This document shows, piece by piece, positions 5,191-59,920 of a DNA stretch of 64,000 nucleotides (positions are counted from its first letter, which is position 1; every line of letters begins with the position of its first letter). The stretch is taken from positions 369,788 through 433,787 of the forward strand of contig RHPI01003488.1 in assembly GCA_009103225.1 (NCBI GenBank), in the 5' to 3' direction. The notes under the pieces were generated by a model. That model was given only the letters and a program-made list of their open reading frames with translations, did not search any database and was not told the origin of the DNA. Both the position numbers and the translations under genes were made by a program. This stretch comes from Chlorokybus atmophyticus. Lineage: Eukaryota; Plantae; Mesostigma and Chlorokybus algae.

Positions 5191-8100
5191 CTACACATCG
5201 GTTGGGCCGTCCACAACGAGTTGTTCGTCGAGTGCAGTAAACTCTTCAAACAAGGCCTGCAAATAGCGACATTGACTACTGCAATGTAAATGCACCTGCA
5301 AATGCAATGTCACATGCACACGAGCCCACAGTGGTTCGTGCAACTGTACCTTGAAATGGTTGACAGCATGAAGCAGGTCATCCGTGCCACAGATCTCCCT
5401 TATACTGTTTGCAGGCAAAGTTCATGGCCCAAAGTGTCAGGGGCCAAACACACCAAGAACGCATGAACAATTCAAAAAGGTAGATCAACAGATTCCAAAC
5501 TCACCTGTGCATGGCCAGTTGGGGAATGCCAACATCTACAGTGCGAATGCCAGTGTGGCTGGCAATAATGGGACCAATGGTCGAACCGCAGGGCATGTCA
5601 TTCCGCACAACAAATTCCTGGAATGCAACAAAGAGTAACCACGCCTGTAGCAGTGAACAACCTCAAAAAGAATTGAAACCTACCTGTGTGGGCAAGTTGT
5701 GACGCCTGGCGAGCTCACGGAACAAGCACGCAGTGACAGCGTTGGTTGCATAGCGCTGATTTGCATTGGTCTTGATGACCAGCCCTTTGTGCATCTGTGG
5801 CTGATGGTGCTCTTCGTGCTGCAAGCAATCACACAATGCTCAGCTCCACTGCGATTGACTCAAGGCAGCGCTTAAGTGAAGTCTCACCTTGTCTGGGTAG
5901 TTTGGATGCAGACAGTGTGCCATGTCTGCTGAAACACAGTAGCTTCGGCGGATGGCACGTTCCACTACATTCTGCCGAGAAATGTGGTCAGCTGTTGGCA
6001 TGATTCTTGCAAGCAGCAATGTTAAGCATTGTAGCAGTGCAACGACAGATGTAGAATTAGAAATCAGAGACAAGCTTGAACTCAATGACACGCATACTCT
6101 ACCTCATCGGGCTTGTGACTGGCATCGGAAACGCTTGTGGTGACCTACATACGCGACACAAGTTAGAGACATGAACGGGAAAGGACTTGTGCACCAGCCC
6201 ACTCACCCTTTTAACCGCCTCCATCATGACAGGGGAGCCAGCACCTTGCGCAGAGTCAGAGCCCACCTAATAACCAGACTGAGGTAAGTCTGGGTAAAGT
6301 TACCTCAACACCAGGGTGCAAGCCTTTGCATACCTCCTCATGGTCAAACAGTGCAACCATGCGCACCTGCACACATACACCAGTTTTCAATCTGGTTTGG
6401 ACAAGGCATGGCAAGTGTCGTCTACTGAATGTTAGTCACAGTAGAGTGCTTCACGAAACATAGACACGCAAATCAATATGAATGCATGTGTGGCAGTCAT
6501 AAAACTCAATTACACGCACAGTTGTTCAAGCCACACGCACATTGGCCACTGGCGGATGAATGCACGCAGAGACATACCGACTTTTCATTTGCTAGCGAGG
6601 AGTCCGACGTGCTCTCCAGAAGAGCCTGCAACCTGACTGTGAGTGGCAACCAAAGCATCCTCAGTTCAAGACAAACAAGTAACTACTAGTAACCAGGCAA
6701 GGCCGACAGTGCACATACCTTCAGTGCACAGAATGACATGCCCAGGTTGTCCAGCCTCCCAGAGAAGATAAACTCATCAAGTGCTCCACCGATTGCTGCA
6801 AGAAACCAGGTAGTTAGCTGCCGACTGGATTGTTTGTGCAGCAGTGGTGCCATGCGCTGCTGTGGCGAGGCACACATACCACTTGGTTGTGTATCACAGC
6901 ATTGCAGCTCGAAGTCCAAGATGTCCAATGGCTGACACTGCAACTCGTTGGCTAACAGCTGGAAGAACAGGCAACATGTGATCAGAACTGCAGTAGTGCA
7001 TGAAACAACTGCAAACATTGAAGGCCTATCCCGAGTGCAACAGAAGCTGTTTTGTACTTGTAGAAGTATGGCATGGTGTGGGTTTTCCTTGTCAGCCTTC
7101 TCTCCTTCCTCCGCCTTGTCACCTTTCTCCGTCTTTTTGTCACCTTCTCCATTCAGAGCAGCCTGAGAACAACATTTGACGTGACGACGACTCCGCCAAA
7201 CACTTGGTGGTGTTGGAACGCTACCGGCATGACACAAGGATACCTTGATCTTCGTGGCTAAAACTGGCACAAGATGCGTCTGCGTGTTGGGTTTAAAGCC
7301 TTCCGTGGATAGCTCCCTGCAACCAACCAGCCGGTAAACATTGCTGCCCTCAATAAGCAAATAGGTATACAATCACAGTGGTTGATATAGTGTCACCACC
7401 ATGCTGCAAGCAGCTGTTACATGGACAAGACAAGGCGGAGCGACAAACAGATATGATAAGGAACAAAGACTCCTGAACTTCGTCAAGAATAACAGCTAAC
7501 TGGAAGGAGGAGACAACGGGGCACAACCAGCAAAGGAAGCGGTACATGTCTGACCTGTAAAGGTGAATAGCAAGGTTGGGAATGCGCAAGATGGGCTTTG
7601 AGATCCTGACAAGTTCATGAGAGTATTTCCCGCCTGCTCTTGATAGCAGCACTCTACCAGCGACGCTCAGATCACGATCGAACCAAGTGTGCCACAAGCC
7701 TCCACCATAGGTTTGCACCTGTCAGCCGTCAAGCCAAGTTGCATGACTTGGGACTACCGACACTTCCGGGTCACAATGCTTGCAGCATTCAATGCGCTAT
7801 ATCCTGACATACCCCAACGGTGAGGAAGCCACCCTTCACACCCTTGGACACTGGTTTCAGCTTCAGAGCGGGACTGTCAGTGTGAGCACCAACGACAACA
7901 ACACCATTGCCTTGTTGAAACCTATCGTGGAAGCAGCAATGAACTAGTCAGTCACAGGACGCAAATTATGCGATAGCTGTTCTCACGTTGCGTGTGCTGC
8001 TAACTGGGACACTTACTTTGAGCCCACTGCAAATGCAACGATAGTGGACATGTTGCGCGTGAAGAAGTATTTTCCTCCAGGCTGAAGGTTCCAACCATCC

Positions 8101-8614
8101 TTTTCAAGCAGCTCAGAGTAGCCCGCGGCGCCCAATCTCTTCTTTGCTTCCGCTGCAAAGCGTAGATCACAATTAGGTTTCTTGCTGTCAGAAACAAAGG
8201 CACACCACGCACTTGCGCATGGGTTATGCTCATTGACTATGCAATGCGTACCATACTGTCTGGCTGCGCATGATAGTATGTATACAATTAAACGCTTTTC
8301 ACAACAAACACCACATGCAGTATGGAAAATGTACAACTGTTACAGCTGCGCTGCCATACAGTATGAAGCTGCAACGACAGCAGCGAGTCGGTCAGGTCGA
8401 GACATTATGTAACTATGAAACCAATCTCCACTCAAACCAGCAGTCTGCTCGAAGGCCAGCATGCAATCGTACACAGCAAAGCATACGATCAGAGGAATAT
8501 ACAGATAGACACAACGCTGCTTTGAAACGCACCAACTGCATGGAAAGGCGTCCATGCTTCGTTCAGGAAGGTAACGAACTCCTGAGCTACAGCTGCGACC
8601 TCCTCCGTAGCCAT
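5191..8614 (-). CDS. DNPEP: Aspartyl aminopeptidase (peptidase M18), copy 2, multi-exon, apparently lacking a transit peptide
   Basis: Exons read [27 protein letters not shown] (8614), [109 protein letters not shown] (5191). An in-frame TAA lies 10 codons upstream of the ATG; an additional upstream coding exon is not excluded. Confidence 0.92.
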
Positions 8615-17518: not shown

Positions 17519-18339
17519 CTGGAGTCACGTGCGGCGAGGGGTGCGACGTGCGCCGACCGTCAACGAAACGCATAGAACATGCCTCGACAGGAACCCAGGT
17601 ACCGCCCCCCGCTTTCATCACAGCCAAACATCTCATCCCATGGCTGTCGTAGGCTGCCAACCGCCTGGTTGATGTCATGTCCACAGAGAGAGAGAGATAG
17701 CATCATAGGCTATCAAGTATCGGTTTATGATAAACTTTACATATCTGCAATACTTGACACTTGATAATTGGAATTTTATTATCAGCTATATGATGCATAA
17801 TGAAATTTTTGCTCTCGACATTAAGCTTATGCTCATGGTCTTGCTGTAATTATCCAATCTCAGTAATATCAATGCGACGAAACAAACAAACATTTGCAAT
17901 CAACAAATGAGTGCCCACATGAGTGCGCATATAATATGAATGCACATGCAAGACAAACGCATGTTTCAGCACAATGCAATCGGTAGTCACGTATGACGAC
18001 AATGCATGTTAACTGACGGGCACATGTTTATGATTATTAATATATGCATGCCTTCTTTTAACATGTGTGCAATTACAGCAAAATGATCAATCATTGTAGG
18101 CAACACGAGATTCAAATTCTTGCAATTTTATATGTACCATATTATCTCATGAAACGGTATTTATAGTTTAATCATTCGTGCTTTAGAAAGGGCTCTTTTA
18201 AATTACTGAGATAATCACCCAATTATGCACTGCCCCTGCGGATACAGCTAGGGCTGCCTGCTGTTACTTTTAGTCGACCATGCCTGCCGCCGTGACACTG
18301 CCTGTCACGCCTATACGGCTAGCAAAAGTCATTCCATGT

Positions 18340-19116
18340 CCATTATTTATGTAAGTAAGAAGAGACTAAGTGCGTTTTTCAGGTCATATGCAAGTGTGGT
18401 GCTTGTGGGGTGGCTCACATGGTCTTCTTTTGAGTCTATGCCATCAATGACGGCTAGCATAGAGCTGGTCAATGCTGAAGGCTATGTGAGCCTGCCTCAT
18501 AATTTTCTTGTGAATAAACTTATTTACTAGTATAAAGGAGGCCTAGTGGAGAGCGAGACATAGTTTGCATATTTTCGCATATGTGTGCATATGTAGTGTG
18601 AGGTATGTGTGTGCATATGTTTGCATGCGTGTGCAAATGTACGCATATGCGCGCATGTGAGGTATGTACAACATGTATGCATGTGTATGCATACATGCGC
18701 ATGTGTGCGTGTGTATATGAGTGCATATGCATGCATGTGCTGATGTCACCAGCCAAGGACGTTCACAACGTTCAAGACTAAGGTGTGATCAGCCTAAGGA
18801 CGTTCACAATGTGCGAGACTAATATGTGAAAGCCCCGAGGCAGAGGTTGAGGTTCGAGGCTGATGCCATTGTGTGTGGCAGCTCAGAGGCATGAATGACG
18901 GTCAACGCAGCCATGACAAGGCAAGAAGCCTTGGGTATGGGTGTTCTAGGTCGGCGAGTAGTATGGAGGAGTATATAAGAGTGTCCCAACAACTTGAAGT
19001 GTTGGGGCAAATGTTGAGGTGCATACTCTACTCTTGTGTGGGGTGCCCAGTTTGGTTGTTTAAGGGGCTCTCCCTCTCATCCCATGTGGGGTGTGATGTC
19101 CATGGCAACTCTGCAC

Positions 19117-19179
<63 letters not shown>

Positions 19180-19260: not shown

Positions 19261-19857
19261 TCTTGATAGGGCTTCCATATGTAAGTTTTTGAGGTTGTGC
19301 GTAAGTATGCCAAGCTGACCACCAAGTTTGTGGGTGAGATCGTTCCAGTGCATGTCATGCATTGTACATAACAGCATGAGTATAATATAAAATCCCCCCC
19401 CCCCCNNNNNNNNNNNNNNNCCCCCCCCCCCCCCCTTTCTTTGGAGTGTGCTTGATGGATTGAAGTAGTTACATTACATATGTGATTATTTCTTGTAACC
19501 ACTTGTTGTGAAGTGTTGCTGATATTTCAAGCCCCTCTATGTTTGCATATGATGATCGTTTGAACACAAATGAAATCTTGTGTTGAAGCCTTGTGACAAG
19601 CCTGGATAATCGTAAACTACCCAATATAGGATAGATGCTGATGTGCTACTAGGTTGGGCTGCCAAGCAAATGCGTGCATGCAAACCAAGAACTACCGGTT
19701 GGATGGAGGCTGTACTGTCTTGTACCAAGGGTACGTACGGTACGACTGTGTGGATTGTGCCATTTCGCGGCATCCGTCTCGAAGCGGCCATGCGCACATG
19801 TACAAAACAGGCAGTTGGCACGGCAGGGGTTGTTTGTGCAAGCGGTGGGTGTGGGGC

Positions 19858-26520: not shown

Positions 26521-26749
26521 CTTGCCTTTGTTAACTTTGCTTGGAATGACCAAAGCATAAACCGCTAAAGATATGCAATAACGAACAAAACCATGAATGT
26601 TGCACTCGCGGATGCGCTACAAGGATCATAACAGGTGGTAGGTTAAAGTGCGCATATGTAAAATTGCATCATGATGATATGTGTGCGCTCGTGCGCATTG
26701 ATGCCTCGTGTTACCCCCAAAAGGCTGGTGAAAGTCACTCTCATGTTCC

Positions 26750-27520
26750 TTACTTATGTGGTAAGTAAGAAGAACTAAGTGAGGATCCCGTATAGTCATG
26801 TTGTGTAGTACTTTGCATATGTGCTCATGAAGTTAGTTCTTGTGCACTTAGTGTGCAAGGGCGTTGTAGCTACACATAGGCACTGTCTACTAGCAAGCAC
26901 AGGGCTGGTCGGTGTCATATGTTCGCATGTATATGCATATGGTTGCATATGCATGCATGTGTCCGCATATGAGTTCATATGTGCGGATATGAGTGATGTA
27001 TGCATGTGTATGCATGTGTCCGCCTATGCATGCATATGTATAAGGTCCTAGACTGATGTGACCAGCCTTGGGCGTTCACAATGTCCGAGGCTGATGTGTG
27101 ATCAGTCTTGGGCGTTGACAAGATGTCCTGGGGCTGATGTGGCAGCTCCTAGGCATGAGTACAGGTCAACGCAGCCATGACAAGGCAAGTAGCCTTGGAC
27201 ATGGTTGTTCTAGGTCGGAGAGCAGTAAAGAGGGGGTATATGAATGGCCTCAACCAGTGTTGAGGCAGCTCAGCATGTGCATACTCGACTCTTGTGTGTG
27301 GGGTGCCTAGTTCAGTTGTTCAAGGGCTCTCCCTCTCATCCCAAGTGGGTTGTAGTGTCCGTAGCAGCCTTGCACGTGAGTGGGGTGTGCTAGAGTGTGT
27401 GTGAGCTGAGTGGAGGGTTTGTTGTGCATCCTCTCCATCCCGTTGCGGTGCTGGTCATTCCTTCAACAAGGTGCCGCACCGTGATATGTTGTGAAGAAGT
27501 TCTTGTGCGTGTGCACAAGT
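26750..27520. repeat. Dispersed repeat, copy 2 (same family as 18340-19260)
   Basis: Same conserved blocks in the same orientation, visibly diverged. Confidence 0.8.
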
Positions 27521-27599: not shown

Positions 27600-30500
27600 T
27601 GCACCTATGCACTTGCCAGACATGTACACATGTATTGCATGTTATTCGCATGTCATATGCGTGCATGCGTGTCATGTTGTGTCATCGTTGACATTGATGC
27701 ATGTGAATGTGTCATTGTTGACATTAATGCATGTTAATGTGTCATATTGTACACACACACATATCCGACGTTTGCAAAGCAGCACCCAGTGTTACTCACT
27801 CATCTGGTCTTTCAACCAATGCACGCAACACACACGAACACACACACGCACGCGCACATATGCACGCGCTATCATACACACAGACTTGGATGTGAAATAG
27901 ACTTGGGTGTATTTATAGGCTCATGCTGCAAGTCGTAAAGTGAACAACATCATCATCCTCGCATTGACACCCGCATTGCACATGTATAAGGCAAACCCAC
28001 ATGCACACACGCACAGGCGACCACCCTAGGCATGGTGATATATACGCAACCCGATGCTGCTGCTGCCAGAACTTCTCCGGAGAGAATCTGTTTAAAGATT
28101 ATGGCGACACTCTGCCAATGCGTCACGCACTGCCACCGGCCGAGGTGGACGACTGGAGTCATTGATGTGCCACCAGTGCTGTTGATACGTGTTCGTGCTG
28201 GTGTGACACTGCTGCATTTGCGCATGGGAATCGTGTATGCGGTGTGCAGAATTGTGACTGCACACACGCAACCGTACATGCGTACGCACGCCCATGTGCA
28301 CCGGGGTCAGGACTAGCATTGCGNNNNNNNNNNNNNNNNNNNNNNNNNNNNNNNNNNNNNNNNNNNNNNNNNNNNNNNNNNNNNNNNNNNNNNNNNNNNN
28401 NNNNNNNNNNNNNNNNNNNNNNNNGGGGGGGCGGGGATGACGCTGGTGAACGACCGCAAGCTGGCGTGGCTGGCGCTTATCACGTGGACTCTCATTGATA
28501 GAGAGGCGAGTTGCGCACCTGCTGAGCGAATAGCCACCCACGCAGGATGGCTCTCGTCTAGCACGACAGACACGTACACACATGTGCTGATGATGGGGCG
28601 GAGAGCAATACACAGAGGACCCCCCGCCGCCCACTGAGCAGCAGCAGCAGAGCTTTCAAAACGCCGCCTCGGCCGCCTGCTGCGGTATGCCCGCCGCAGC
28701 CATGCTGTTCAGGCAGTGGCAGCAGTGCTGCCAGTGTGACACCCCATCAGTCCCATCAACAGCATCCCAATGTTGATTGCATGAAAGGGCTGCTGCTGCG
28801 TACAGGAGTCTACGTGGACAATGCTCGCCGCCTTTGCGCTGGCCTGGATGGACACATGCATGCGGCTAGGCAGGAAGGCGGCACTCCTCACTGACCAGGT
28901 AAGCCAGGGTAGGTTGCTTTGCGGCCACCTTGGACTCACCGATGCCCTGTGTGCGCGTCCTCGTGTTCATCTAAGTGTGCGTTCAGGTTGGTTGTACTCT
29001 TGGTTCAGCTCACCCGTCTGCATGCGGCCCAACTCGTGCGCGACGGCGACACGTGGTCGGTTGCATCCACTGCCGCCGCCTCCGACGTTCGTAGTGCTGG
29101 ACCCGGCCAGCCTGGGCCAGCCCCTCCACTTCCACTGCAGGACATGCAACGTAAGTATCCTCAGCTCCACGGAGATGGCATGCCATATCACAGGTAAAGT
29201 ACACATCGCATTGCCTGCCTGCTTGCTTGCCAAGCAGTGCTTTTTTAACAACTCTTGAGAGCTGTTCAAGAAAGCACTGCCTCATCATTATCATGATGCT
29301 CTCCTTGTCTCCTCTTGCTCTTGCCTTATTACAGCAGCTAACTAAACTTGTTTGGCCTTGTCTCTTGCTGCTCTTCTCTTCTCTTCTCTTCGTCAGGCCA
29401 GCCTGACGCTAGCATGGCGGACCGGAGTTCCTTGTGCACAGTGGCGCAGCCGTGCGCACGTGGAGCGAGCGGGTGGGGGCGCGCACAGGGTTAGCAGAAG
29501 GAGAGGACATGCAAAAGCAGCAGCAGTTGCAGCAGCAGCAGCAGCAGACGCAGCGAAGATCACGCACATCCAAGTACCTTGGGGTATGTAGGAGCGGTCA
29601 CCGCTGGAGGGTGCAGCTGCGCGTCAGCAAGAGACCCGTTTATCAGGGCACATACAGGTGAGTGGAGGGTTGTAAGAGAAACGTAGACACAAAGGTAGCA
29701 GTGCGTGGAAAGGAATTCACTTGCTTGCGCATGCATGGCAGGGATGAGAAGGAGGCGGCGCTGGCCTACGACAGGGCTGTGACAACGAGGGGCTTGATGG
29801 ACAAGCGCCTCAACAAAGTAAGCTTCCCCGACGACTTCCCGGGAGAGGCCAAAAACAAGGAAGGTGAGCGCTTACAAGCTCGTCAATCAGCCTGCAGGCC
29901 GATGGCATCGCACTTTATATGCATGTATGCACACAAGGCCCGCACGTCACGCAAAACAAGGACACGCGCATGCGTGTGTTCAGTGCCGACTGTGCTCAGC
30001 AACGCATCGAGAGGACAGCACAGCATGCCAAGCGCCTGAAAGCCGCTACAGAGCTTCGTTCGTGCGACACAGAGACGCCAGTGAAGAGTCTGACTACAGT
30101 CCATCGCGGTGCACCAGGTCAGAAGGCAACAACAAGCAGCTTTTCGCAACAAGAGCTTGCGCAGGTCCCTCTACTGCCTCACCTGCCACGCAGCTGTACC
30201 TTCATGTAGACGAGCAAGCCAATGCAGCTGGTGATGCCCATTCAGCATGCAAAACGGGACAGCGCAACACCCTGCACGATCAACAACTTCTCCCCCNNNN
30301 NNNNNNNNNNNNNNNNNNNNNNNNNNNNNNNNNNNNNNNNNNNNNNNNNNNNNNNNNNNCCCCGCCCTCCCCAACTTCTTTCCTTCGCTCAAAGCACAAA
30401 CCCGTCACCCGCGCCTCCACGGCCAACGGAGGAGAGGCCACATGAGACACGGGAGCATGTCTGGGCTTCCGTGAGCGCACTGCTGCGAGAGAGCCAACAG

Positions 30501-31400
30501 CTTGAGGAGGCCATTGGCGGCTTGGAGAGAGACCTGGCAACAAACCGCCAGCAGATTCCCGAGAGGGCTGGGCTGATTGTCGCGCTTAGACCAGATGGAT
30601 CCTTAAAGCCTTATCAGGCAGCGCTCGAGTCTCGTGGACAGCCGCCATGACCTTAAAGAGACGCTTGCGAGTCAGCGCAAGGCTTTGGGAGACACCTCAC
30701 GGGCCTTGCGAGAAGCCACCCTGCACTTTGCTAGACACTTGGCCTGAGTCTGACCTGCTAGTATCTCACAATGCTCAAGTAGTAACATGTCCATGAGCTG
30801 CAGTACCCGTGTCGCGTCAGCTTTCGATGCATGCACTGCTAACATAGTATATCTGCTGGTGCTTTGTGGGCACATCAACCTACTAGTGCAGGCTCGTCCG
30901 TTGTTGTTGTAATGTCATGTAGATGTGACTGACGTGATGTTGCTGACTGTCAGTGCAGGTATGTGTCATGCACAAGGCGACATGGAGACCCACTCAACAT
31001 ACATAGGGTCACCCACCGAGCACAGGATGTGCAGTGCTATCATGTGTGCACCAACACGAGGAGTGCATTCAAACAAGTTGTTGCAGTGGTCCAGTTGCCA
31101 AGTAGGTGTTACATGTGTTCACACTCAAGGCGCGAGGGAGGGGGAGGGGGAGGGCTGAGGGGAAGGGCAGAGGGGCCCTCGGTGACTTGGCAAGGGTTAC
31201 ACCAGCGGAGCACACAGTGAACGAGAAGTGGAAAAGAGAGGGCGGACAAGGACACGCAGAGCGAGGGAGCGGAGGGAGAGGGAGTCATGCTCGTCATTGC
31301 TTGCACCGCTGCTGACATGCTAGACTACCGCAACTCACAGTTGTTAATGGCCCTGTGGGCAGGTAATTGCAATTGCTAATATGCATGCCTAACGGGGTTT
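27600..31400 (+). repeat. Duplicated zf-AP2 unit A (gene plus conserved flanks)
   Basis: Upstream, intronic and downstream sequence is alignable by eye with 32600-36850 and with the reverse complement of 60090-63450. Contains N gaps at 28324-28423 and 30297-30359. Confidence 0.8.
28781..30650 (+). pseudogene. Zinc-finger/AP2/coiled-coil gene, copy A (frameshifted)
   Basis: FHCRTCNVSILSSTEMACHITG; SKYLGVCRSGHRWRVQLRVSKRPVYQGTY|RDEKEAALAYDRAVTTRGLMDKRLNKVSFP. Frameshifts relative to copy B in exon 2 and near 30590. Confidence 0.75.
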
Positions 31401-32599: not shown

Positions 32600-35500
32600 C
32601 GCGGCACAAAGATGCATAAATTGCATGCTCACTCACCTGGTTCTTCATCACTAATGTACACGCAATCACACACGCATACATATGCGCAAATACGCACACC
32701 ATAAATAACGACTTATAGGCATGTGTCCATGCATATGCTTGCAGGTCGACTTTTATTATAAGTACAAGTTATTAATAGATTAGCATCGCTGCATAGACAC
32801 GCACATAATGCATATAACACAAGGCGTATGCATACCCCATATGCACGCGGGCACCGTGCGGCTGAGGCAGCCGCTCTAGGCATAGTGATTTAAAAGCGCC
32901 CCGATGCTATTGAAGATGTTTGAGGTGAGGCTATCGATGATTATTGACACTCTGCCAATGCATGCACGGGTGGCCCAGCTTATGGTGAGAATCATTATCT
33001 TATCAACATGCCACTAGTGTTGGTACTAGCTGTTCGCATTAATGTCTGACTGTTGCATTTGCGCATGAGACTTGTATGTACGCTTGTGAAAGCCATTGCG
33101 CACACGCGCACACAAGGGTCGAATTTACCTTCTGGGGTCGCTGATGAAATGACTGCAAGCTGGCGCTTATCACAAAAGGGAACTCCAAGCTATCAAGAGA
33201 CTATTTGCGCGCCTGCTGAGCGAAGAAGGCAGACATGAAACATACACACATGCTTACGCAATGTGCATGCTCGTGCAATCTCTACTACTGTGCCTGAACA
33301 CAGGTTGAACACAGGTTTACAATGTAAGTAATTCGCTTGTTCCGTTGGCTTGTGTTACACCAGAAAGGTGTTTTGGTTTTGTGTGCACTGTCATCAGTAG
33401 GCTACTTTGCCATGTAGTTGGTGCACATCTTGTCTTGGTTGACTTAGTGAGGTAGCTGATGACGGTGCGGAGTGCAGTGCACAGAGCCCCGGCCGGCGAT
33501 GCTTATAGAGCAACAACAACAATCCGAGGCGAAGAGCCAAGTTTCGTGGCTTTGCTTATGGTGGGTTCTGAGCAGGAGGCGGCGGCGGCGCCTCAGCCTG
33601 CTCCGGTATGCCTCACGCTCACGAGGTCGATGCCAGCCGCAGCCATGCTGTCACAGGCAGCACTGCTGCTGCCAGTGTGACAGCCCATCATCCTCCCCAC
33701 AGCACGGAAGTGTCGATGGGATGAAAAGCCTGCTGCTGCGTACAGGAGTAGTACGTGACGTCGCCCGCCGCTTTGCGCTGGCCTGGATGGCCACATGCAT
33801 GCAGCTGGCAGCGGGGAGGTGGCAGTCATCGCTGATCAGGTAAGCCAGGGTTGCATGCTTTGCGGCCATCTTGGACTCACCAATGCCCTGTATGCGTGGG
33901 TTCACTTGTTCACTTGAGTGTGCTTGTTGTCAGGTTGATCTCTCTCATGGTTCAGCTCACCAGCCTGCATGCGGCCCAGCTTGTGCGTGAGGGCGACACG
34001 TGGTCGGTGGCGCCTAGTGCCGCCCCTCCCGCCAGGACGCCTTCTCATGCCGGGACGTTCGTGGTGCTGCACAGGGCAAGCCTGGGGCCCCGACTCCACT
34101 TCCACTGCAAGACATGCAACGTAAACGTCCTCAGCTCCAGGGAGATGGCATGCCATGTTACAGGTAAGGTGAACACACCGCTTTGCCTGCTTGCTTGCTT
34201 CAACAGCACTCCCGCTCTCATCATGGATGCTCTCGCTCTTGCCTTGTGTCCTCTTGCTTTATCGCAGCAGCTAATTGAACTTGTTTTGCCCTATCTCTTG
34301 CTCTTTCTTGTCGTCGCTTCGGCCAGGCCAGTCTGACGCTAGCATGGCCGACCTCGCCAGCCACTTGACCGTGTGCAGCGGCGACACCGTGCGCACGTGG
34401 AGCAAGCTCGTGGGCGCGCGCAGAGGGCCTGCCGACAAGGAGGACAACCATCATCATCAGCGGCAACGGCCAGGCACACGTCCCACATCCAAGTACTTTG
34501 GGGTCAGTAAGAGCGATGACCGCTGGAGGGTGCAGCTGAGCTTCAACAAGGGTCCGGGACTTAGGTATCAGGCCACACACTGGTGGGTTGAGGTTGGCAA
34601 AAACCTAGTCCTTGATGTGGTAAAAGGAGTTCACTTGCTTGCGCATGCATGGCAGGGATGAGAAGGAGGCGGCGCTGGCCGACGACAGGGCTGTGACAAC
34701 GAGGGGCTTGACGTACAAGCGCCTCAACAACATGAGCTTTCCCGAAGACTTTGCAGAAGAGGTCGAGAATCAGGAAGGTGAGAGCTTACACGCTCGTCAA
34801 CCAGCCTGCCAGCCAATGCATGCATGCATGCACGAAAGGCCTGCACGTCATCACAACAGGAGCATGCGCATGCGTGTGTACAGGCAGTGCCGAATGCGCT
34901 CAGCATGGTGTCGGGAGGACACCACAGCATGCCAAGCGCCTGAAAGCGGCTGCAGAGCTCACAGACGAGGCCAGTGAAGACTCTGACTACAGTCAGCCAT
35001 CTAGGTGCACCAGGTCGGAAGGCAATAAGCAGCTGTGCGCAAGTACAAGAGCTTGCGCGACTTCCTCAACTGCCTCGCCTGCTGAGGCCAACACGCCAGG
35101 CAAGGCCCCCTCTCACACTGCCACGCGGCTGTATCTTTCGGTACACAAGCAAGCCAATGCAGCCCGTTCGACAAGACTGGGACAGCGCAACAACGCCACA
35201 CACGATCAACATCTCCCCTCCTCCGCTCAAAGCACAAATCCGTCACCCGCGCCACCACTGCCAACGGAGGAGAGGCCACGTGAGACACGAGAGCATGTTT
35301 GGGCTTCTGTGAACGCACTGCTGCGAGAGAGCCATCAGCGAGAGGAGGCCGCTCGCGGCTTGGAGAGGGACCTGGCAACAACCCGCCAACGGGTGCCCGA
35401 GGTTGATGGGCGAATTGTCGCGCTCAAAGAACATATGGATGACCTTATCAGGCAGCGCGCGCGTCTCGTGGACAGCTGCCATGGTCTGGAAGAGACGCTT

Positions 35501-36850
35501 GCGAGCCAGCGCAAGGCTGTGGCAGACACCTCACGGGCATTGCGAGAAGCCACGGTGCGCTTCGCTGGACACTTGACCTGAGCCTGACGATTCAAAACGC
35601 CAAAACAGCAACATTCCCAACAGCTACATGACCCGTTAACTGTCTTCAGCTTTTCAGTGTACACGGAGTGTGAAGGGAGATCGTATGCACTGTTGCGGTG
35701 ATTTGTCTGCTTGTGCTCAGTAACCACATCAACCTGCAGTTGCATCCAGGTTCGCCTTGTTCGTTTCACTACCAATGTGAAGATGTGAGTGACATTGCTG
35801 GCCATCACTGCAGATCTGTCAGGCATAAGGCGACATGGACCGACTCACATAGGGTTGAAACCATCATGTGTGCATGGAGAGTGCAAGCGTTGCAGAGAGT
35901 TCCATGAGTCAAGGTCTTAATAGTACTTAGACTGACTTTGCAGCTCAGTTGATATTAAGTGAACATTCAATGGCAGATAGCACTTATGCCGGCATGTATC
36001 AGTCACCTTCAAGAACAAAGCATACATAGATGTGCTTGACAGCATGCATGCTACTGACCTAGCATACTGTCTCTTACAGAGTGGCACTTTAGTCAAGGGC
36101 CCTCAACATAATCAATGACTTTCGATGATCTGCAGATGCATCAAGGTGCACTTTGTTGCCGATTGTGCTCTACCTCGCACAACACATATCCAAGCGCAAT
36201 CGGCCAGAGTTTCACTTTATACCGCGCCACCGAGCACCGCTGCCAACTTCCAACGTCCCGCGCAGTGCGAAGCTTGGCGTGGTAGAGTCACAGTTTATTC
36301 GTTTCACCCGCCTCCTTTGCACTTGTCGCATGCATTTCATACGCAATGACCGAGGAGCTGCTGGCCATGCAAGCGGATGGGCATCCTCTCAAGCCTACTA
36401 ACGACATTGCAAGCGCACATGGTGAAAGACGAAAGGCTGCATCTACTGCACGCCCTCAGCGCTACTATACAAGATGCTGTTTCAGACGCTGCAGCGCCAC
36501 CTGTTGGCAACAATGGCACGGGGAGCAGGTCAGGTCGACTAGTGAAGCAACGTGCCCGTGCAAGGGACATTGTGGCACACATACCACACCACCTACAGCT
36601 GCAACAACATAACTGCAGCACGCATTTACACTGCACAGCGAAGTGCACTGACGTACAGTGCAGTGCGGGGCAGGGTTTGGAATAGCGACCGAAGCGGAGG
36701 GAGAGAGGGGAAGGGACAGTGAGAGCGGGTGGCGGAGACATGGAGAGGAACATGTTGGTCATGCTGTGATTACCGTCATTGCAAACGGACAGCTAACCTA
36801 CAACCCTGTGGGCAGGTAATTGGATGCTAACACGTGTGCATGCATGTCTA
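32600..36850 (+). repeat. Duplicated zf-AP2 unit B (gene plus conserved flanks)
   Basis: Shares upstream, intronic and downstream blocks with units A and C; CCCTGTGGGCAGGTAATTG occurs downstream of both A (~31352) and B (~36805). Confidence 0.8.
33721..35581 (+). CDS. Zinc-finger/AP2-domain/coiled-coil putative transcription factor, copy B (apparently intact)
   Basis: Five exons with compatible phases (2,1,2,1): ...FHCKTCNVNVLSSREMACHVTG|QSDASMADLASHL...SKYFGVSKSDDRWRVQLSFNKG...|DEKEAALADDRAVTTRGL...SFP|...coiled coil LLRESHQREEAARGLERDL...FAGHLT*. Start codon uncertain. Confidence 0.75.
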
Positions 36851-42325: not shown

Positions 42326-44377
42326 ATGGGGCCGTTCATGCAGCGGCTGTTGAGGCGGCTGGTGCGATGGGTGTGGGTGCTGATGAACATCGTGGTGGTC
42401 ATCGCCTGCGTCTACCTTGCCGTACGCATGCGCGCACTCAGCTATGAATCACACGCCATCGCATGGTTCATATCAGGTCAGTGGTGTTCCACGAACCTAG
42501 TTGATTTGTCAATTGTCACCATGTGATCATCGGACTCACATCCTCAAATGCTGCCGAGCTGTTTGACACGAGCAAACATCGGAGACTTCAGCCCAATAGT
42601 TCGTATGGATATGAGTGTTGCATGCAGCTCAAATACTGGAATAACTACACAGCATTTGTCTGCACCTGGTGAATATAAATTGCAACCATCCATGCGTAAG
42701 TGGAGTTGAAACCGGAACATGCTGTGAAGTGGACGTTTACCTGCCTTGCAGAGTGTTCCCAGTGCAGGATCAGCGCGCATGCTCTTGTGCAGGGTTGTAC
42801 GCATGTGCGCGTGCCCCTTGTGTGAGTTGTATGACAGCGCGGACATTGCCACATTGTGAGCTTAACGTCTTGTCTGCTCAACTGTAGCGCATAGGGCTGC
42901 CATCGCTGTGCACGCATATGGGCGCAAACCCCATTGGTATGACTGCAATGACAGCACAGACTCATTTTCACGGAGTTGAGCTTGTTGTCTGCGTATCGTC
43001 TGCTGCGAGTTTGTGATGTTTAAATAAGCTCGCCATGATTGTGGTATTCATGTTGAGTGCACATACGCATGCTGCACCACTGCGATGTTGGTTCAACATT
43101 GGGTCCTTGATGGAGATGTTGTCAACTTACACAGACATGTTTGTACTGTTTACAGGTGTTTTCGTGCTCCTTTCGTTGCCCATCACCTTTGACACTATCG
43201 CCCAACACTTGTACAACTACAACAAGCCCAAGCAGCAGATTAAGCTGATCAGAGTGATGCTGATGGTGCCGGTCTATGCCGTGGACTCGTGGCTGGCTCT
43301 CGTTTTTAAAGACGCCGCCATCTACTTTGACACTGCCCGCGAGTAAGTGGCAGTACATTGTGAATGGCAGTCGTTGGTCTCATTCATGTGGTGTTTGTTG
43401 TGTTGAGATGGTATGCATGTAAACAGCCTTAAGGTGCAGCGTTGCCTTGGCTACTCAATGAAGCAACTGTTGCGCAGATGCTATGAAGCGTATGTGCTGT
43501 ACAACTTCTTCGAGTACCTATTGGCGTACATGAGTGAGCAGGGTGACCCCGTGCAGATCATTGCGTGTCAGCCGGAGACAGATCACATCTGGCCGCTGCA
43601 TCGCCTGCGCTCCTGGGAGATGGGCCAGGAGTTTCTAGAAAACTGCAGGGCGGGCATCCTCAACTACGTCATCATACGGCCCATCACAACCTTTGTTGCA
43701 CTGTGAGTGTTGGTTGGTTGGCTCAACTAGCTGTAGGGTGTCTTGCTGCTTTGCTCACTTGGTATGTGCGTTCGTGCAGGATGTGCCAGTTCAACGACTC
43801 GTACGGGGAGGGTGAGATCAACTTCCACAAGGCGTACGTGTATGTGATGATTATCAATTCTCTGTCTCAGTCGTGGGCTTTGTACTGCCTGGTGCTGTTC
43901 TACAAGGCGATCCACAAGGAGCTGGCGCCAATTCACCCGCTGGCCAAGTTTGCGTGCGTCAAGTTTGTGGTCTTCTTCTCCTTCTGGCAGAGTGTGCTCA
44001 TCGCCATCCTCGCGCGCATCGGCTTCATCCAAGATCCTGCCGGCATCACCAGCTACGACAAGCATGACGTTGCGCGTGGGCTGCAGGACTTTTTGATCTG
44101 TATTGAGATGTTCTTTGCCGCCGTCGCCCATGGCTTCGCCTTCTCCGCCAAGGAGTATGAGGACCCGCTCACCCATGCGCGCTCACCCGACTGGCGCGTC
44201 ATGTTCGACGTCAATGATGTTGCCACCGACGTCATTGACCACGTCACGTCCGCGCCCAAGAAGGTCGTGCGCAATGTCGTGCGCGCCGTGTCGGGGCCGG
44301 GTGGGCCCTCGGGCAAAAATGGCACAACGCAGGATGAGCGCATGGGACTCATCAGCGAGGAAGAAGGGGTGTCGTGA
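42326..44377 (+). CDS. TMEM184: TMEM184/OST-alpha family (LAZ1-like) multi-pass membrane protein
   Basis: HLYNYNKPKQQIKLIRVMLMVPVYAVDSW; ARE|CYEAYVLYNF; KFACVKFVVFFSFWQ; GLQDFLICIEMFFAAVAHGFAFS; four exons in frame. Confidence 0.95.
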
Positions 44378-52597: not shown

Positions 52598-55500
52598 TAG
52601 GGTAAGACCAGTATATTTCGGACACCTAATTAAGGATAGGTTTTGTACTATGTTATACCTATTTGATGGTGTTAGGTGATAGATTATGGGATAGCCCTTG
52701 GCGCGTACTGCTTGACACCGTTGATGGCATATTTTTAGGGTTAGTATTGTGCTGTCAGCGGTCAGTCAAGTAGACAGGTGTCAGCGAGTGGTCTTAAAAC
52801 CCTATTTTCTTAATTTCGGACGGCTGAAAACGGCTGCTTTCAGCCTGCTGTGGTGGTGTGCTGGCGTCTGACAGGCCTTAGCCTGTGCTGACGTGTTGCC
52901 CTTGCCTAGTGGCGCCCGTGACGTACCTTTCAACCTCGCTGCCATCGCCGCAGAGGCTGGTGGCAAGGTTGTTGTTGTTGTTGGTTGTCCGAACCTAGGC
53001 GAGGTGGTTGGCGTCTGCTGCCTGGTGCGCCTTCCTAGTCGTCTTGTGGCGCCGAGACGCTCCGTCCGCCCGTCCGGCCTCCATCATGGTGAGTCCTAGT
53101 CGGCACATGCTTGGTGTTGTAGTTGAAACCCTAGGTGTGCCGTTTGCCTTGCTTGCCTGCACAGCCTTGCATGCACTCTGTGCGTGCGTGATTGTTTTTG
53201 TGTGTGTTGTTGGCTTGGTGTGTGTGCGCGTTGTTCTGTCTTGCTGTGTGGTTGTTAGGTTGGGGGCTTGGGTTGTTGGCATTGCATCCAGGTGTGTGCA
53301 TGTGTGTTTGTATTCTGCATAAGCATTGCATGCTGCATTGCGATTCAGCACTGTGCATGTGTGTGGACATTGCATGCTGGTGCTGTAGTGTTTCATTGGC
53401 ACAGTGTGTTGCACATATGTACATGGCCCTAGCTCTGTGGCCTCTCAAGAATGACTCTATCGAAACCCCATAGCAGCTAGCTTGAGGTTCAGCAATAGGC
53501 GAGCAGGAGTTGCGGTGGGGGCTGCTGCATCCGCAACCATGGTTGCCTGGTGCATCTCAGATCTGGTGGGGGACAGGGACATGTAGCGGGCAGGTTGTGG
53601 ACTTCCTGTGGGGCTTGGTTGTGGTGTCATGTTGTGCAGGGGGTCGTCCAGGTAGGCTGCATCTTGTACCTCCGTGTTCAAGTCGATAAAGCAAGGCCTG
53701 GCTCCTGCAAGTGTGTTTATGTGGGTGGGCCCTGCTCTGGTTATTGCTTGTTGCTGTGCTAACAGCTTGGCCTGCTTGGCAGCCTCCTTCTCAGCCTTGG
53801 CAGCCTCCTTCTCTGCCTTGGCGGCCTCCTTCTCAATCCTGGCTTGCTGCTTCTGCCAGGCCAGGGCCTCCCGCTGTGCAGCCTTCTCCACACGCTGCGC
53901 AGCTGCCAGCGCCTTCTTGCTTGCTGCTTCTGTCCTCTTCCGCGCTGCCTCCTGCTTGCGCGCCTCGCCTGATGCCTTCTTTGCTGCCAGCTCTGCCCTC
54001 TTGGCTTGCAGGGCCTTGATGTACCCTTCAGATGTGAGGCAAAGGGAGCCCTGAATCTGAGGGTTCTTGGCATTCTTCTGTTGCCACGCCGAAGGGCCAG
54101 CCTGCTGCTGCATGACTCTAAAGTTGATGTTGTTGGTGGCACCACCAGCACCTGCAGCCCCTTGAGAAGGTGGGTCATTGTTGACGTTGATGGTAATGGT
54201 GTTGTTGTTGTTGGTGATGTTGACATTGTTGTTGTTGACAATGCTGGGCATCACGGGCTCTGGAGGCTTGTTCTCCTTGTCGCTGCTGCTGTCATCATCT
54301 GTGGCATCAGAGCCGCCCTCCTCATCAAATGGCACAGGTACTCCTTGCCCATCCAACACGGGGCCTCCGAACTCGTGCTGCACTTGTGCATGAGCCAGGT
54401 CTGGGGTGACTTCGTCCGCCGTTGGTTTGGGCAGCTGTGGCAACTTGTCGTCCAATGCATGTACATTAACAGGCCAGATCCCTGTCACAAGGACAAGGTA
54501 TGTTTACCACGCTGTGTCTTCTGCAATTAGGTCAGCAATTAGGCCTAGGCATGCATGGGTGCTGTACCTGTCTTTTTGAACCCGCTCGTGATGTTGGCAG
54601 GTGTCATGGCTAGGTAAAAGCGCTTTGCTGTCAGCTCCACGAACTTCAGCTTGGTGATGGGGCAAGTGGGGTCTTCAACTCTCCACTTTAGGAACTCCTT
54701 CTTGTAGTGCGCCTTCAGCGACTTAAAGCAGCTCACATCCAGCACCTAAGTATGCATGGTATGTGTACATCAGCATTTGCATCTCAGCCAGCATGCATGC
54801 AAACATGCGCATCTCACCTGCATCAGGTGTGTCATATGGGCAGGGAATGTCAGCATAGTGACACCGTTGGCCCGTGCCTTCTCCAGGAGCTCAGGATTCA
54901 TACGAGAGGAATGGCCGTCAAGCAACAGAAGAACAGGCCTGTCCGGGCTGGCGCCACCAGGTATGTGGTTCAAGAACTGCTTGAACTAGTCAGCAAACAG
55001 GTCCAACGTCATGTATGCATTTTCCTGCATGCGCATGAAGGACCCATATGGGGCAGCCTGCACATAGTTCGATGTGAAGCGTGACCCCTTCAGGATGTGC
55101 ATTGGAGGCATAGAGGTGCCAGCAGCGCTGACGCATGCCATTACGCTCATATGTTCTCGGCTGCTAGCTTGGTTGTAGTATGGGTTTTTGTACCCCTTTT
55201 TGCATATCACTTTCACAGTTCCTGTCATTCACAACATTGTTAGCAACTTGCAGATGGCCTCTAACAGCAACTTGTGTGCATGTGTGAGCGCAGGTACATA
55301 CCAACATTGTCTGGCTCAAAGCCAGTCTCGTCCGCATTGAAGATGCGTGTGGGATCGTCGATGCCAAGCTCCTCCAGAGTCTTTGTGTACAGGTCAAAGA
55401 AGCCCTCCACATTCTCCCTGGTACACGCCTGCCACCTCCTCCGATCTAGACCCTCAGCTACTCTTGATGCCAACTGGTGGCGTGTCATGAGCAACCGCAA

Positions 55501-55757
55501 CCACTTGTAGCCAGGCATGCCACTGGCACCAAACCTCTTCAGCCTCATCTTGGGGTCATCCTTCAGCATGCTGACCACCTGCTCACGCAACACCTAGGTG
55601 AGTCCAGCAGCACACTGCACACATCATACACACACAACAGTCATGCACACACAGGCCTATTGTTCACACTTGCACACACAACCTCAACAACCAAGTGACT
55701 TCACCTTCTGTAACAGGGCTGGGCGGGTGACACCAAAGTTGCTGTCCGCACACCGGT

Positions 55758-56297
55758 TGTCACAGCCCACTCGACCACAAAAGACTTGGTGCTTGGTGCT
55801 TTTATGGTCGATTTGTGGTAATTTGAAGTACCTTCCCGTTACATTCCCCCCCACTTAAGAACGCTGACGTCCTCGGCAGCTGCCCGGTCAGCTGGGGAAT
55901 TACCCAAGGGGTTTGTTAGGGTCGGTCACCGGCCCCACCACCCAAGGACCGGCCAATTTAGGCCCATACCGGTAAACGCGCGCATAGCGCTCCGCTGCCG
56001 GCCCCACAGGTCGCGTCGCCGCGATAGGCAGGTCGCGCCCTGCCGCGCCGACTGAACTGGTCAGGTCACTTCGGCGCGACTGCCATTAGGCAAGTCGCGA
56101 CCCATCGATGATGGCACTCATAAAGTGACCATTTACGATTATTGGATCGAGAAACAACGACCGCGGAATTCGTGTGCAAGGCAGGAATCGAACCCGGGAC
56201 TCAAGCTCCGATGACCAATGTCACAGCCCACTCGACCACAAAAGACTTGGTGCTTTTATGGTCGATTTGTGGTAGTTTGAAGTACCTTCCCGTTACA
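55758..56297 (-). mobile_element. Terminal-repeat retrotransposon in miniature (TRIM), 540 bp, non-autonomous
   Basis: LTRs 56297-56219 (79 bp) and 55843-55758 (86 bp), TG...CA ends, differing by a 7 bp duplication and 1 substitution. 5 bp TSD ACCGG (plus strand CCGGT at 55753-55757 and 56298-56302), PBS-like TGGTCATCGGAGC (56217-56205), PPT AGTGGGGGGAA, 375 bp internal region. Confidence 0.93.
56184..56238 (-). promoter_or_regulatory. tRNA-type (type 2) Pol III promoter spanning the TRIM 5' LTR/PBS junction
   Basis: A-box TGGTCGAGTGG (56238-56228) and B-box GGTTCGATTCC (56194-56184) start 44 nt apart, as positions 8 and 52 of a tRNA do. Confidence 0.65.
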
Positions 56298-57399
56298 CCG
56301 GTTGATCCAAGTGACAAGCTCCTTCTCCTCCGCATCGCTCATCACAGGTGGCCTCCCCATAGGCACTGGAAGCTGCAGCTTCTTAGGGCAGTGCACATAG
56401 TCACAAAGGGTGGACTTGGCCACACCATGGGTGGCAGCAGATATCCTAAGGCCCATCCCAGCCTTCACATCATCAACAGCCACTGCCATCTTCAACAAGA
56501 GACCCTGACCCCGTGCCCCCCAGTTGACATATCGCATGCCCTTGCGCCTGGTGGTGCCTAGGCAGCTTCTGAGAGCAGCCTTACTGCGGCCCCTGGCACG
56601 TTTGCCCAAGCGAGGGGCAGAGGGTGTGCTGCATGCTCTCTTGCTACCACACGTAGGAGTGGTCTCCTGTATTGCATAGCAGTCAGAAACATAGCAGCCC
56701 TAGCACACAACAGTAGCGGACTTGTATGACAGTAAGCATGTCAACACCATCTCACCTCATCTTCTTGTGTGCATCCTGTTGTGCATTGACTGGCCTGCCC
56801 CTCTAGTGTGCCTCTCATGTGCACCATGAATGCACCCTCCCTATCGCAACTAACAGACAACGCTTCTCAATACACAACACATCCCCCTCACCAATGCACA
56901 CCGCCACTGCCTCACCACCACACCACCAACACTTGCCCACACCCAACTTCAGACTGCTGCTATCATAGCAGCAGTTGATGATCAACTGACTCACAAAACT
57001 GCCAATTTTCGCACTTGTACATTACCCGCCACAACTTTCAAAAGCCAAAGCTGTTAAGCAAACCCTCTTAGGGGGGTTAACTAGACAGCTCAGGCAGTCT
57101 ACACAGTTATCGAGCACCACCGTTGGCCAAGTACAACTCTATCCTTAAGGGTTCAAAGTCAAGTAAACCATATTTCAACACTTGAAATTAAATACTTGAC
57201 TGAGTGCCTTCGCGCCATTACTCAACCAATGATGGTGAAACCTAGTGGAGGCATTGCATTGGCTCACAGCTACACGCCAGAACAACAACCACCTCATTTA
57301 GCCGCCAAATGCCGCAACTACAGCGTGGCAAATAGCCCTTAGCGCGCCTTGTCCGAAATTATGACACTGTCCGAACTAAGTCGGTCTTACCCTAGTCAA

Positions 57400-59271: not shown

Positions 59272-59920
59272 NNNNNNNNNNNNNNNNNNNNNNNNNNNNN
59301 NNNNNNNNNNNNNNNNNNNNNNNNNNNNNNNNNNNNNNNNNNNNNNNNNNNNNNNNNNNNNNNNNNNNNNNNNNNNNNNNNNNNNNNNNNNNNNNNNNNN
59401 NNNNNNNNNNNNNNNNNNNNNNNNNNNNNNNNNNNNNNNNNNNNNNNNNNNNNNNNNNNNNNNNNNNNNNNNNNNNNNNNNNNNNNNNNNNNNNNNNNNN
59501 NNNNNNNNNNNNNNNNNNNNNNNNNNNNNNNNNNNNNNNNNNNNNNNNNNNNNNNNNNNNNNNNNNNNNNNNNNNNNNNNNNNNNNNNNNNNNNNNNNNN
59601 NNNNNNNNNNNNNNNNNNNNNNNNNNNNNNNNNNNNNNNNNNNNNNNNNNNNNNNNNNNNNNNNNNNNNNNNNNNNNNNNNNNNNNNNNNNNNNNNNNNN
59701 NNNNNNNNNNNNNNNNNNNNNNNNNNNNNNNNNNNNNNNNNNNNNNNNNNNNNNNNNNNNNNNNNNNNNNNNNNNNNNNNNNNNNNNNNNNNNNNNNNNN
59801 NNNNNNNNNNNNNNNNNNNNNNNNNNNNNNNNNNNNNNNNNNNNNNNNNNNNNNNNNNNNNNNNNNNNNNNNNNNNNNNNNNNNNNNNNNNNNNNNNNNN
59901 NNNNNNNNNNNNNNNNNNNN
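59272..59920. other. Assembly gap (N run)
   Basis: Seen directly; smaller gaps near 19406-19420, 28324-28423 and 30297-30359. Confidence 1.

Follow-up and report, generated by a model that had tools for sequence, protein, structure and literature searches.

The DNA analysed here is a stretch of 64,000 nucleotides from Chlorokybus atmophyticus (contig RHPI01003488.1), which we refer to as the window; all coordinates count from its first nucleotide. On the plus strand it carries a TMEM184/OSTalpha-type transporter gene (42326–44374), whose exons are 100% identical to the JGI Chlat1 protein Chrsp32S04973 and whose next relatives are found in Klebsormidium and Mesostigma. In a protein search with this gene, that annotated protein was the sole identical match, and assembled sequencing runs yielded nothing near-identical. 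There are two pairs of tandem segmental duplications (653–3197 and 5348–8165, and 28168–30754 and 33009–35588), with a period of approximately 4.7–4.9 kb and identities of 70–88%, which are probably tandem gene duplicates; a duplicate copy at 6686–7372 gives a match to Peptidase_M18. A repeat of about 0.8 kb occurs at 18325–19143 and 26731–27403, with approximately 79% identity and 8.3 kb between the copies, and partly encloses DNA of low GC content (43–46% from about 22 kb on). These repeats could represent the two LTRs of a retrotransposon that is old and decayed, and no reverse transcriptase or integrase domains were found in the tested open reading frames lying between them (18.3–27.4 kb). 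Runs of N, which represent assembly gaps, are located at 19406–19420, 28324–28424, 30297–30359, and 59272–59920, and the low GC content seen at 58–60 kb is partly an artefact of the last of these, which is 649 N long. No tRNA gene was found by ARAGORN in the 64-kb window.

The locus discussed in the remainder of this work is an intron-containing gene for a pogo/Tigger-like DDE_1 transposase, on the minus strand at 53457–56609. The conceptual product of this gene matches DDE_1 at 4.6e-24, together with a weak match to HTH_Tnp_Tc5, and the gene has relatives containing PF03184 and PF05225. The best relatives in the protein database are just 30–36% identical, and several of those that are named come from animals (Hydra, insects, Branchiostoma). 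The region encoding the N-terminal DNA-binding part is interrupted by a non-coding element of 540 bp (55758–56297), whose sense strand is the minus strand and which therefore has the same orientation as the host gene. The host gene looks transcribed. The element is flanked by a target site duplication (TSD) of sequence CCGGT, one copy being at 56298–56302, beside the 5′ LTR, and the other at 55753–55757, beside the 3′ LTR. Excision of the element on paper, keeping one CCGGT, opens the host reading frame again, to give ...EEKELVTWINR/CADSNFGVTRPALL..., where the slash marks the junction (LVTWINR/CADSNFGV). The insertion into the transposase gene is probably recent.

The element is a terminal-repeat retrotransposon in miniature (TRIM). 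Its 5′ LTR (56219–56297, minus strand) is 79 bp long and reads TGTAAC...GTGACA. The 3′ LTR (55758–55843, minus strand) is a direct repeat of 86 bp, which is the same sequence except that position 23 of the LTR differs (C/T) and that 7 bp, CACCAAG as read on the element strand, are duplicated in tandem. The two are 90.7% identical over 86 aligned columns, when the indel is counted. Both LTRs start with TG and end with CA whichever strand is read. The primer binding site (PBS), TGGTCATCGGAGC, is at 56205–56217 on the minus strand, 1 nt past the 5′ LTR, and the polypurine tract (PPT), AAGTGGGGGGGAA, is at 55844–55856 on the same strand, directly adjoining the 3′ LTR. The plus strand was rejected as the sense strand: read in that direction, the first LTR is not followed by TGG and the second is not preceded by a purine tract. 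All of these features (the repeats of 79 and 86 bp with their TG and CA ends, the 5-bp TSD, the PBS, and the PPT) are present where an earlier note on this DNA had placed them.

There is no open reading frame of at least 50 amino acids lying wholly within the 540 bp. The element thus has the anatomy expected of a TRIM, namely short TG...CA repeats, a TSD of 4–6 bp, a PBS and a PPT, no coding capacity, and a length below about 1–1.5 kb. It is not a tRNA-derived SINE, because it has LTRs, a PBS, and a PPT, and does not have an A-rich or LINE-like tail. A hammerhead, which is the criterion for a retrozyme, was not found in an Rfam scan at E ≤ 10. The element relies on the proteins of an autonomous element, and the 5-bp TSD together with the type of PBS points to a partner of the Copia type. 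The PBS appears to be of the initiator-Met (iMet) type, on the basis of its likeness to that of Helenus-1_SMo, which is described below. It has one extra base, a C, compared to the expected iMet type, and it may be that this copy of the element is defective for that reason. No second copy was found in the 64-kb window, either by a pattern search allowing 3 mismatches or by blastn with a word size of 7. The canonical PBS TGGTATCGGAGC, with up to 2 mismatches, gave matches in the window at chance level only. Neither metagenome nor viral contigs gave a match to exact 20–22-mers representing the LTR/PBS junction and the hairpin/A-box region. All the observations on boxes and LTRs that follow are from this single copy of the element.

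The element contains two sequences that resemble the internal promoter of a tRNA gene. The first is an A-box-like sequence, TGGTCGAGTGG, within the last 20 nt of the LTR. In the 5′ LTR it is located at 56228–56238 on the minus strand (element positions 60–70). The second is a B-box, GGTTCGATTCC, at 56184–56194 on the minus strand (element positions 104–114), which is a perfect match to GGTTCGANTCC and starts 10 nt past the PBS and 25 nt past the end of the LTR. The starts of the two boxes are 44 nt apart, which is the canonical tRNA spacing, and is as the earlier note had described. The A-box-like sequence is naturally repeated in the 3′ LTR (55767–55777, minus strand; element positions 521–531), and there is no B-box downstream of this second copy. 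The sense strand thus carries the pair at the 5′ end of the transcription unit, with both boxes together at the 5′ LTR only, again in agreement with the earlier description. The internal promoter elements of RNA polymerase III (Pol III) are therefore present in the right order, on the right strand, and with the right spacing, which is the sequence criterion for a TRIM of the TRIMp3 group (see below).

The similarity to a tRNA extends a little beyond the boxes. In tRNA numbering, the A-box-like segment can be read as U8, G9, G10, U11 ... A14, G15, U16, G17, and G18, followed by G19. The second segment contains G46-U47-C48 and leads into a 4-pair T-stem that closes a canonical T-loop. This variable-loop and T-arm-like segment, GAGTC-CCGGG-TTCGATT-CCTGC (56181–56202, minus strand), was analysed as a 34-nt fold and has a stem of 4 pairs with a 7-nt loop, so that the B-box does lie in a short T-arm-like stem, as had been proposed. 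It aligns with the tRNA-like part of Helenus-1_SMo. The tRNA invariants (U8, A14, R15, G18, G19, G46-U47-C48, and the T-loop) are confined to the surroundings of the two boxes, and the 24 nt that separate the two tRNA-like segments consist of the end of the LTR and the PBS.

No tRNA is detected at the boxes by ARAGORN, nor by Rfam at E ≤ 10 in a search of 1.3 kb. The best Rfam match in a search of 101 nt is to tRNA-Sec, on the T-arm; it scores 13.6 bits, where the gathering score is 47. Folding of the box region is no better than that of shuffled sequences (z = +1.07) and does not give a cloverleaf. A real or decayed tRNA gene was therefore rejected as the identity of this region. An origin of the B-box by read-through copying of the primer tRNA was also rejected, because this would have given the antisense of a tRNA, whereas TTCGATT is in the sense orientation. 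Nor can the layout be explained by a simple insertion of a tRNA or SINE, given that the end of the LTR and the PBS sit between the boxes. The boxes have been kept while the stems have been lost, and this fits a promoter that acts at the level of DNA rather than a mimic that acts as RNA. The pattern is that of a SINE-type promoter head. Judged from the sequence, perfect boxes at the correct spacing, with lost stems and unrelated intervening sequence, are what selection on a DNA promoter would be expected to leave.

The element strand contains TTTT at two places only. One is in the 5′ LTR (56240–56243, minus strand; element positions 55–58), where it ends 1 nt before the A-box, and the other is the equivalent position in the 3′ LTR (55779–55782, minus strand; element positions 516–519), where Pol III is proposed to stop. 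Downstream of the element, T4 is next met 1139 nt further on. The earlier note took the T4-free body as an argument for Pol III. Its account of where the T4 runs are is correct, but the argument has no weight, because among 457-nt segments of matched GC content taken from the window, 56% are likewise free of TTTT. The absence of T4 from the body was therefore rejected as uninformative about Pol III.

Each LTR is able to form a 13-bp hairpin, between UCGACCAUAAAAG and CUUUUGUGGUCGA. In the 5′ LTR this is at 56232–56265 (minus strand; z = −3.39), and in the 3′ LTR, where the loop is 7 nt longer, at 55771–55811 (minus strand; z = −3.41). Folds of the whole LTRs have z = −3.4. The 7-bp duplication of the 3′ LTR is located in the loop of the hairpin, and doubles a CAA motif. 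A single pair in the hairpin is not Watson–Crick: it reads G.U when the element strand is folded, and C.A when the opposite strand is. This hints that the hairpin may act in RNA made from the sense strand.

The internal region also folds, and in its minimum-energy structure (z = −2.45) the PBS sequence UUGGUCAUCGG pairs with CCGGUGACCGA, located approximately 310 nt downstream. The pairing is between 56208–56218 and approximately 55900–55912 on the minus strand, and consists of 11 pairs, of which 2 are G.U. If formed, such a pairing could mask the PBS or cyclise the RNA. In Ty1, pairing between CYC5 and CYC3 is said to cyclise the RNA.

The earlier note suggested that this element may represent a different class of Pol III-transcribed LTR element. 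This is not supported, because TRIMs with A and B boxes derived from tRNA have already been published, as the Helenus group (Kojima, 2024; PMC10886601). TRIMs containing a Pol III promoter are there named TRIMp3, and comprise Cassandra, Helenus, and Ajax; the use of Pol III by Helenus is itself stated in that work as unproven (Kojima, 2024; PMC10886601). Helenus elements range in size from 311 to 1263 bp and are found in plants and fungi (PMC10886601). The length of 540 bp found here lies within the range of Cassandra, Helenus, and Ajax. No alga appears in the table of Helenus distribution (Kojima, 2024; PMC10886601).

The resemblance to Helenus is considerable. Both are non-coding TRIMs with sense-strand A and B boxes of the tRNA type, a PBS, a PPT, and a 5-bp TSD. 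The one plant Helenus, Helenus-1_SMo from Selaginella moellendorffii, has LTRs of 120 bp, a body of 85 bp, and a 5-bp TSD, and its PBS is TGGTATCGGAGC (PMC10886601). The Helenus-1_SMo PBS, TGGTATCGGAGCT, is the same as the Chlorokybus PBS, TGGTCATCGGAGCT, minus one C. The Chlorokybus element and Helenus-1_SMo have no homology other than at the boxes and the PBS, and the layouts differ. Each LTR of Helenus contains a complete tRNA-like unit that includes both boxes, whereas in Chlorokybus the LTR contains the A-box alone. The tRNA-like unit of Helenus can often be detected as a tRNA, which is not the case for the Chlorokybus element. T4 comes after the boxes and near the end of the LTR in Helenus-1_SMo, but before the A-box in the Chlorokybus element. 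By the criteria for Helenus itself, the element does not belong to that group: its B-box is outside the LTR, and beyond the boxes its LTR has no similarity to tRNA or to SINE2.

Other known elements are more distant. Cassandra, from vascular plants, has a type 1 promoter derived from 5S rRNA (box A, IE, and box C), all of which is inside LTRs that are longer than those described here; no 5S rRNA match was found in the Chlorokybus element in an Rfam scan at E ≤ 10. SINE2 elements are similar in having a 5′ head in which just the A and B boxes, at the tRNA spacing, have been kept, and in being short, non-coding, and dependent on the reverse transcriptase of another element, but SINEs do not have LTRs, a PBS, or a PPT, and have instead a LINE-related or A-rich tail and target-primed reverse transcription. 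The TRIMs of Katydid type, Wukong, and SMART share with the Chlorokybus element short LTRs, a PBS of iMet type, a PPT, a 5-bp TSD, and insertions that are often in or near genes, but are not reported to carry Pol III boxes. They are classed as TRIMp2 (Kojima, 2024; PMC10886601). A search of full-text literature found no report of a B-box beyond the PBS of an LTR element. It is concluded that the Chlorokybus element is in kind a TRIMp3 in the sense of Kojima (2024), and that what is new is limited to its split layout, in which the A-box belongs to the LTR and the B-box comes after the PBS.

These features lead to a possible mechanism, in which the genomic RNA of the element would be made by Pol III, from an internal promoter of the tRNA-gene type (type 2) that is split at the LTR boundary. 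The A-box would be in the U5 part of the LTR, and the B-box in the leader past the PBS, so that TFIIIC would find a full A+B site solely at the 5′ LTR. In type-2 promoters such as those of tRNA genes, transcription starts approximately 10–19 nt upstream of the A-box. TFIIIB would thus be placed for a start at element positions 41–50, and there is a CAA at positions 49–51, near the predicted start. Pol III would then cross a T4-free body of 457 nt and terminate on reaching the T4 in the 3′ LTR. The order of the RNA would be R (9–18 nt), U5 (approximately 21 nt, containing the A-box), PBS, B-box, body, PPT, U3 (approximately 40–49 nt), and R, and the reverse transcription enzymes of the partner element would rebuild both LTRs.

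As judged from the promoter sequence, transcription of the element by Pol III from a split type-2 promoter is plausible, at a little short of even odds. The fuller reading, to which we assign a probability of roughly 0.4, is of an LTR element that is made by Pol III from a split promoter active at the 5′ LTR only and with an R of about 9–18 nt, and which would combine SINE-like RNA with replication by the LTR pathway. As a TRIMp3 it would be the first from an alga, with a layout unlike that of Cassandra, Helenus, or Ajax. Of the interpretation given in the earlier note, there remain a genuine TRIM and a pair of A and B boxes that far exceeds chance expectation, but not the new class or the argument from T4.

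There are several difficulties with transcription by Pol III. The first concerns the T4 in the 5′ LTR. This run precedes the A-box but follows the predicted start, and indeed any normal type-2 start, which puts it at about +5 to +18 of the transcript. Pol III would have to pass T4 in the 5′ LTR and yet obey the same T4 in the 3′ LTR. A T4 so near to the start of the transcript could end the RNA within the 5′ LTR. If on the other hand the start is placed after the T4, there is no R at all. In several organisms T4 is a weak Pol III terminator. The second concerns the hairpin. The earlier note was right that there is a hairpin of 13 bp in each LTR, and it is more stable than expected (z = −3.4), but the predicted Pol III RNA leaves it without explanation, because it is split at both ends of that RNA and is never intact there. 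The hairpin fits better with a longer R that contains it, as in the RNAs of retroelements made by RNA polymerase II (Pol II). The third is that no TATA-like element is found about 30 nt upstream of the predicted start; there is an ATAAAA at element positions 39–44, which is too near.

The best of the alternatives is an ordinary TRIM that is transcribed either by Pol II from its LTR or by read-through from the surrounding gene, with the hairpin inside R; the boxes would then go back to an ancestor with sequence derived from a tRNA or SINE, and would no longer be a promoter. We consider this somewhat less likely than transcription by Pol III, and several of the observations suit it. Hairpins in the R region are common in retroelements, and a full hairpin with a G.U pair on the sense strand only makes sense only if the RNA spans the hairpin. 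The T4 is awkwardly placed for Pol III, the element lies in the same orientation within a gene that looks transcribed, and Pol II is taken to transcribe most TRIM families. Against this, a decayed relic should not retain a perfect B-box, the invariants of the A-box, and the exact spacing when all of its stems have been lost, and the presence of the LTR end and PBS between the boxes excludes a relic of simple insertion. Moreover, an LTR of 79 bp does not provide a convincing Pol II layout either: the ATAAAA would place the start near positions 65–72, leaving at most approximately 10 nt for R plus U5.

A further alternative is that the tRNA-like segments act in the RNA, as contact sites for the primer tRNA when reverse transcription begins; they might, for instance, pair with its T-arm. 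Such contacts have precedents: Ty1, Ty3, RSV, and HIV use additional contacts with the primer, including extra boxes downstream of the PBS in Ty1 and contacts in U5 in retroviruses. It agrees with this idea that the motifs directly flank the PBS on both sides, and that the B-box region is predicted to form a duplex with an initiator-type T-loop core at −11.4 kcal/mol, with 8 consecutive pairs (UUCGAUUC with GGAUCGAA). However, the T-arm of an elongator-type tRNA pairs equally well, at −12.8 kcal/mol. The pairing is non-specific, because any T-arm is partly self-complementary, and a specific pairing of the B-box with the T-loop of the initiator tRNA was therefore rejected. In addition, the segments have the sense of a tRNA and not its complement, and the A-box-like segment has no evident partner in the initiator tRNA. 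An RNA-level role of this kind is thus quite improbable.

The last alternative is that the two motifs are random matches in an ordinary TRIM. The perfect B-box GGTTCGANNCC occurs once in 128 kb (both strands of the window), and the expectation from first-order Markov simulations is 0.21 per window. The A-box motif T[AG]G[CT]NNAGTGG occurs in the two LTRs only, again across 128 kb on both strands. The number of A/B pairs at 30–60 nt expected per 64-kb window, as estimated from the simulated motif densities, is about 1.5e-3 with a loose A-box and about 1.5e-4 with a strict A-box, and for a pair to fall by chance on the sense strand of a single 540-bp element is several hundred times less likely than this per-window estimate. 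It is true that the motif pair was picked post hoc from a scan of many windows, and that the classical A-box consensus TRGCNNAGTGG is mismatched once, with T for C at tRNA position 11; but with so few pairs expected, with each motif confined to the element within the window, with position 11 being a pyrimidine so that T is permitted, and with the additional tRNA invariants G19 and G46-U47-C48, chance is a very improbable explanation.

If the boxes are not a promoter, then there is no more to the locus than a small TRIM that sits in a dead transposase gene. If the split promoter does work, LTR elements would have a second route to transcription by Pol III, in which the 3′ LTR would be silent because only the A-box is repeated. 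The promoter would travel with the RNA, as it does in SINEs, even though half of it is outside the LTR, and the boundary between SINEs and LTR elements would be blurred. Such elements, with their strong predicted TFIIIC sites and tRNA-like boxes, may escape the annotation of both tRNAs and transposable elements, given that the Chlorokybus element was detected by none of the tRNA finders used here. The element would also be a natural test of the minimum length of R that is needed for strand transfer, and would extend TRIMp3 to the earliest-branching streptophyte algae.
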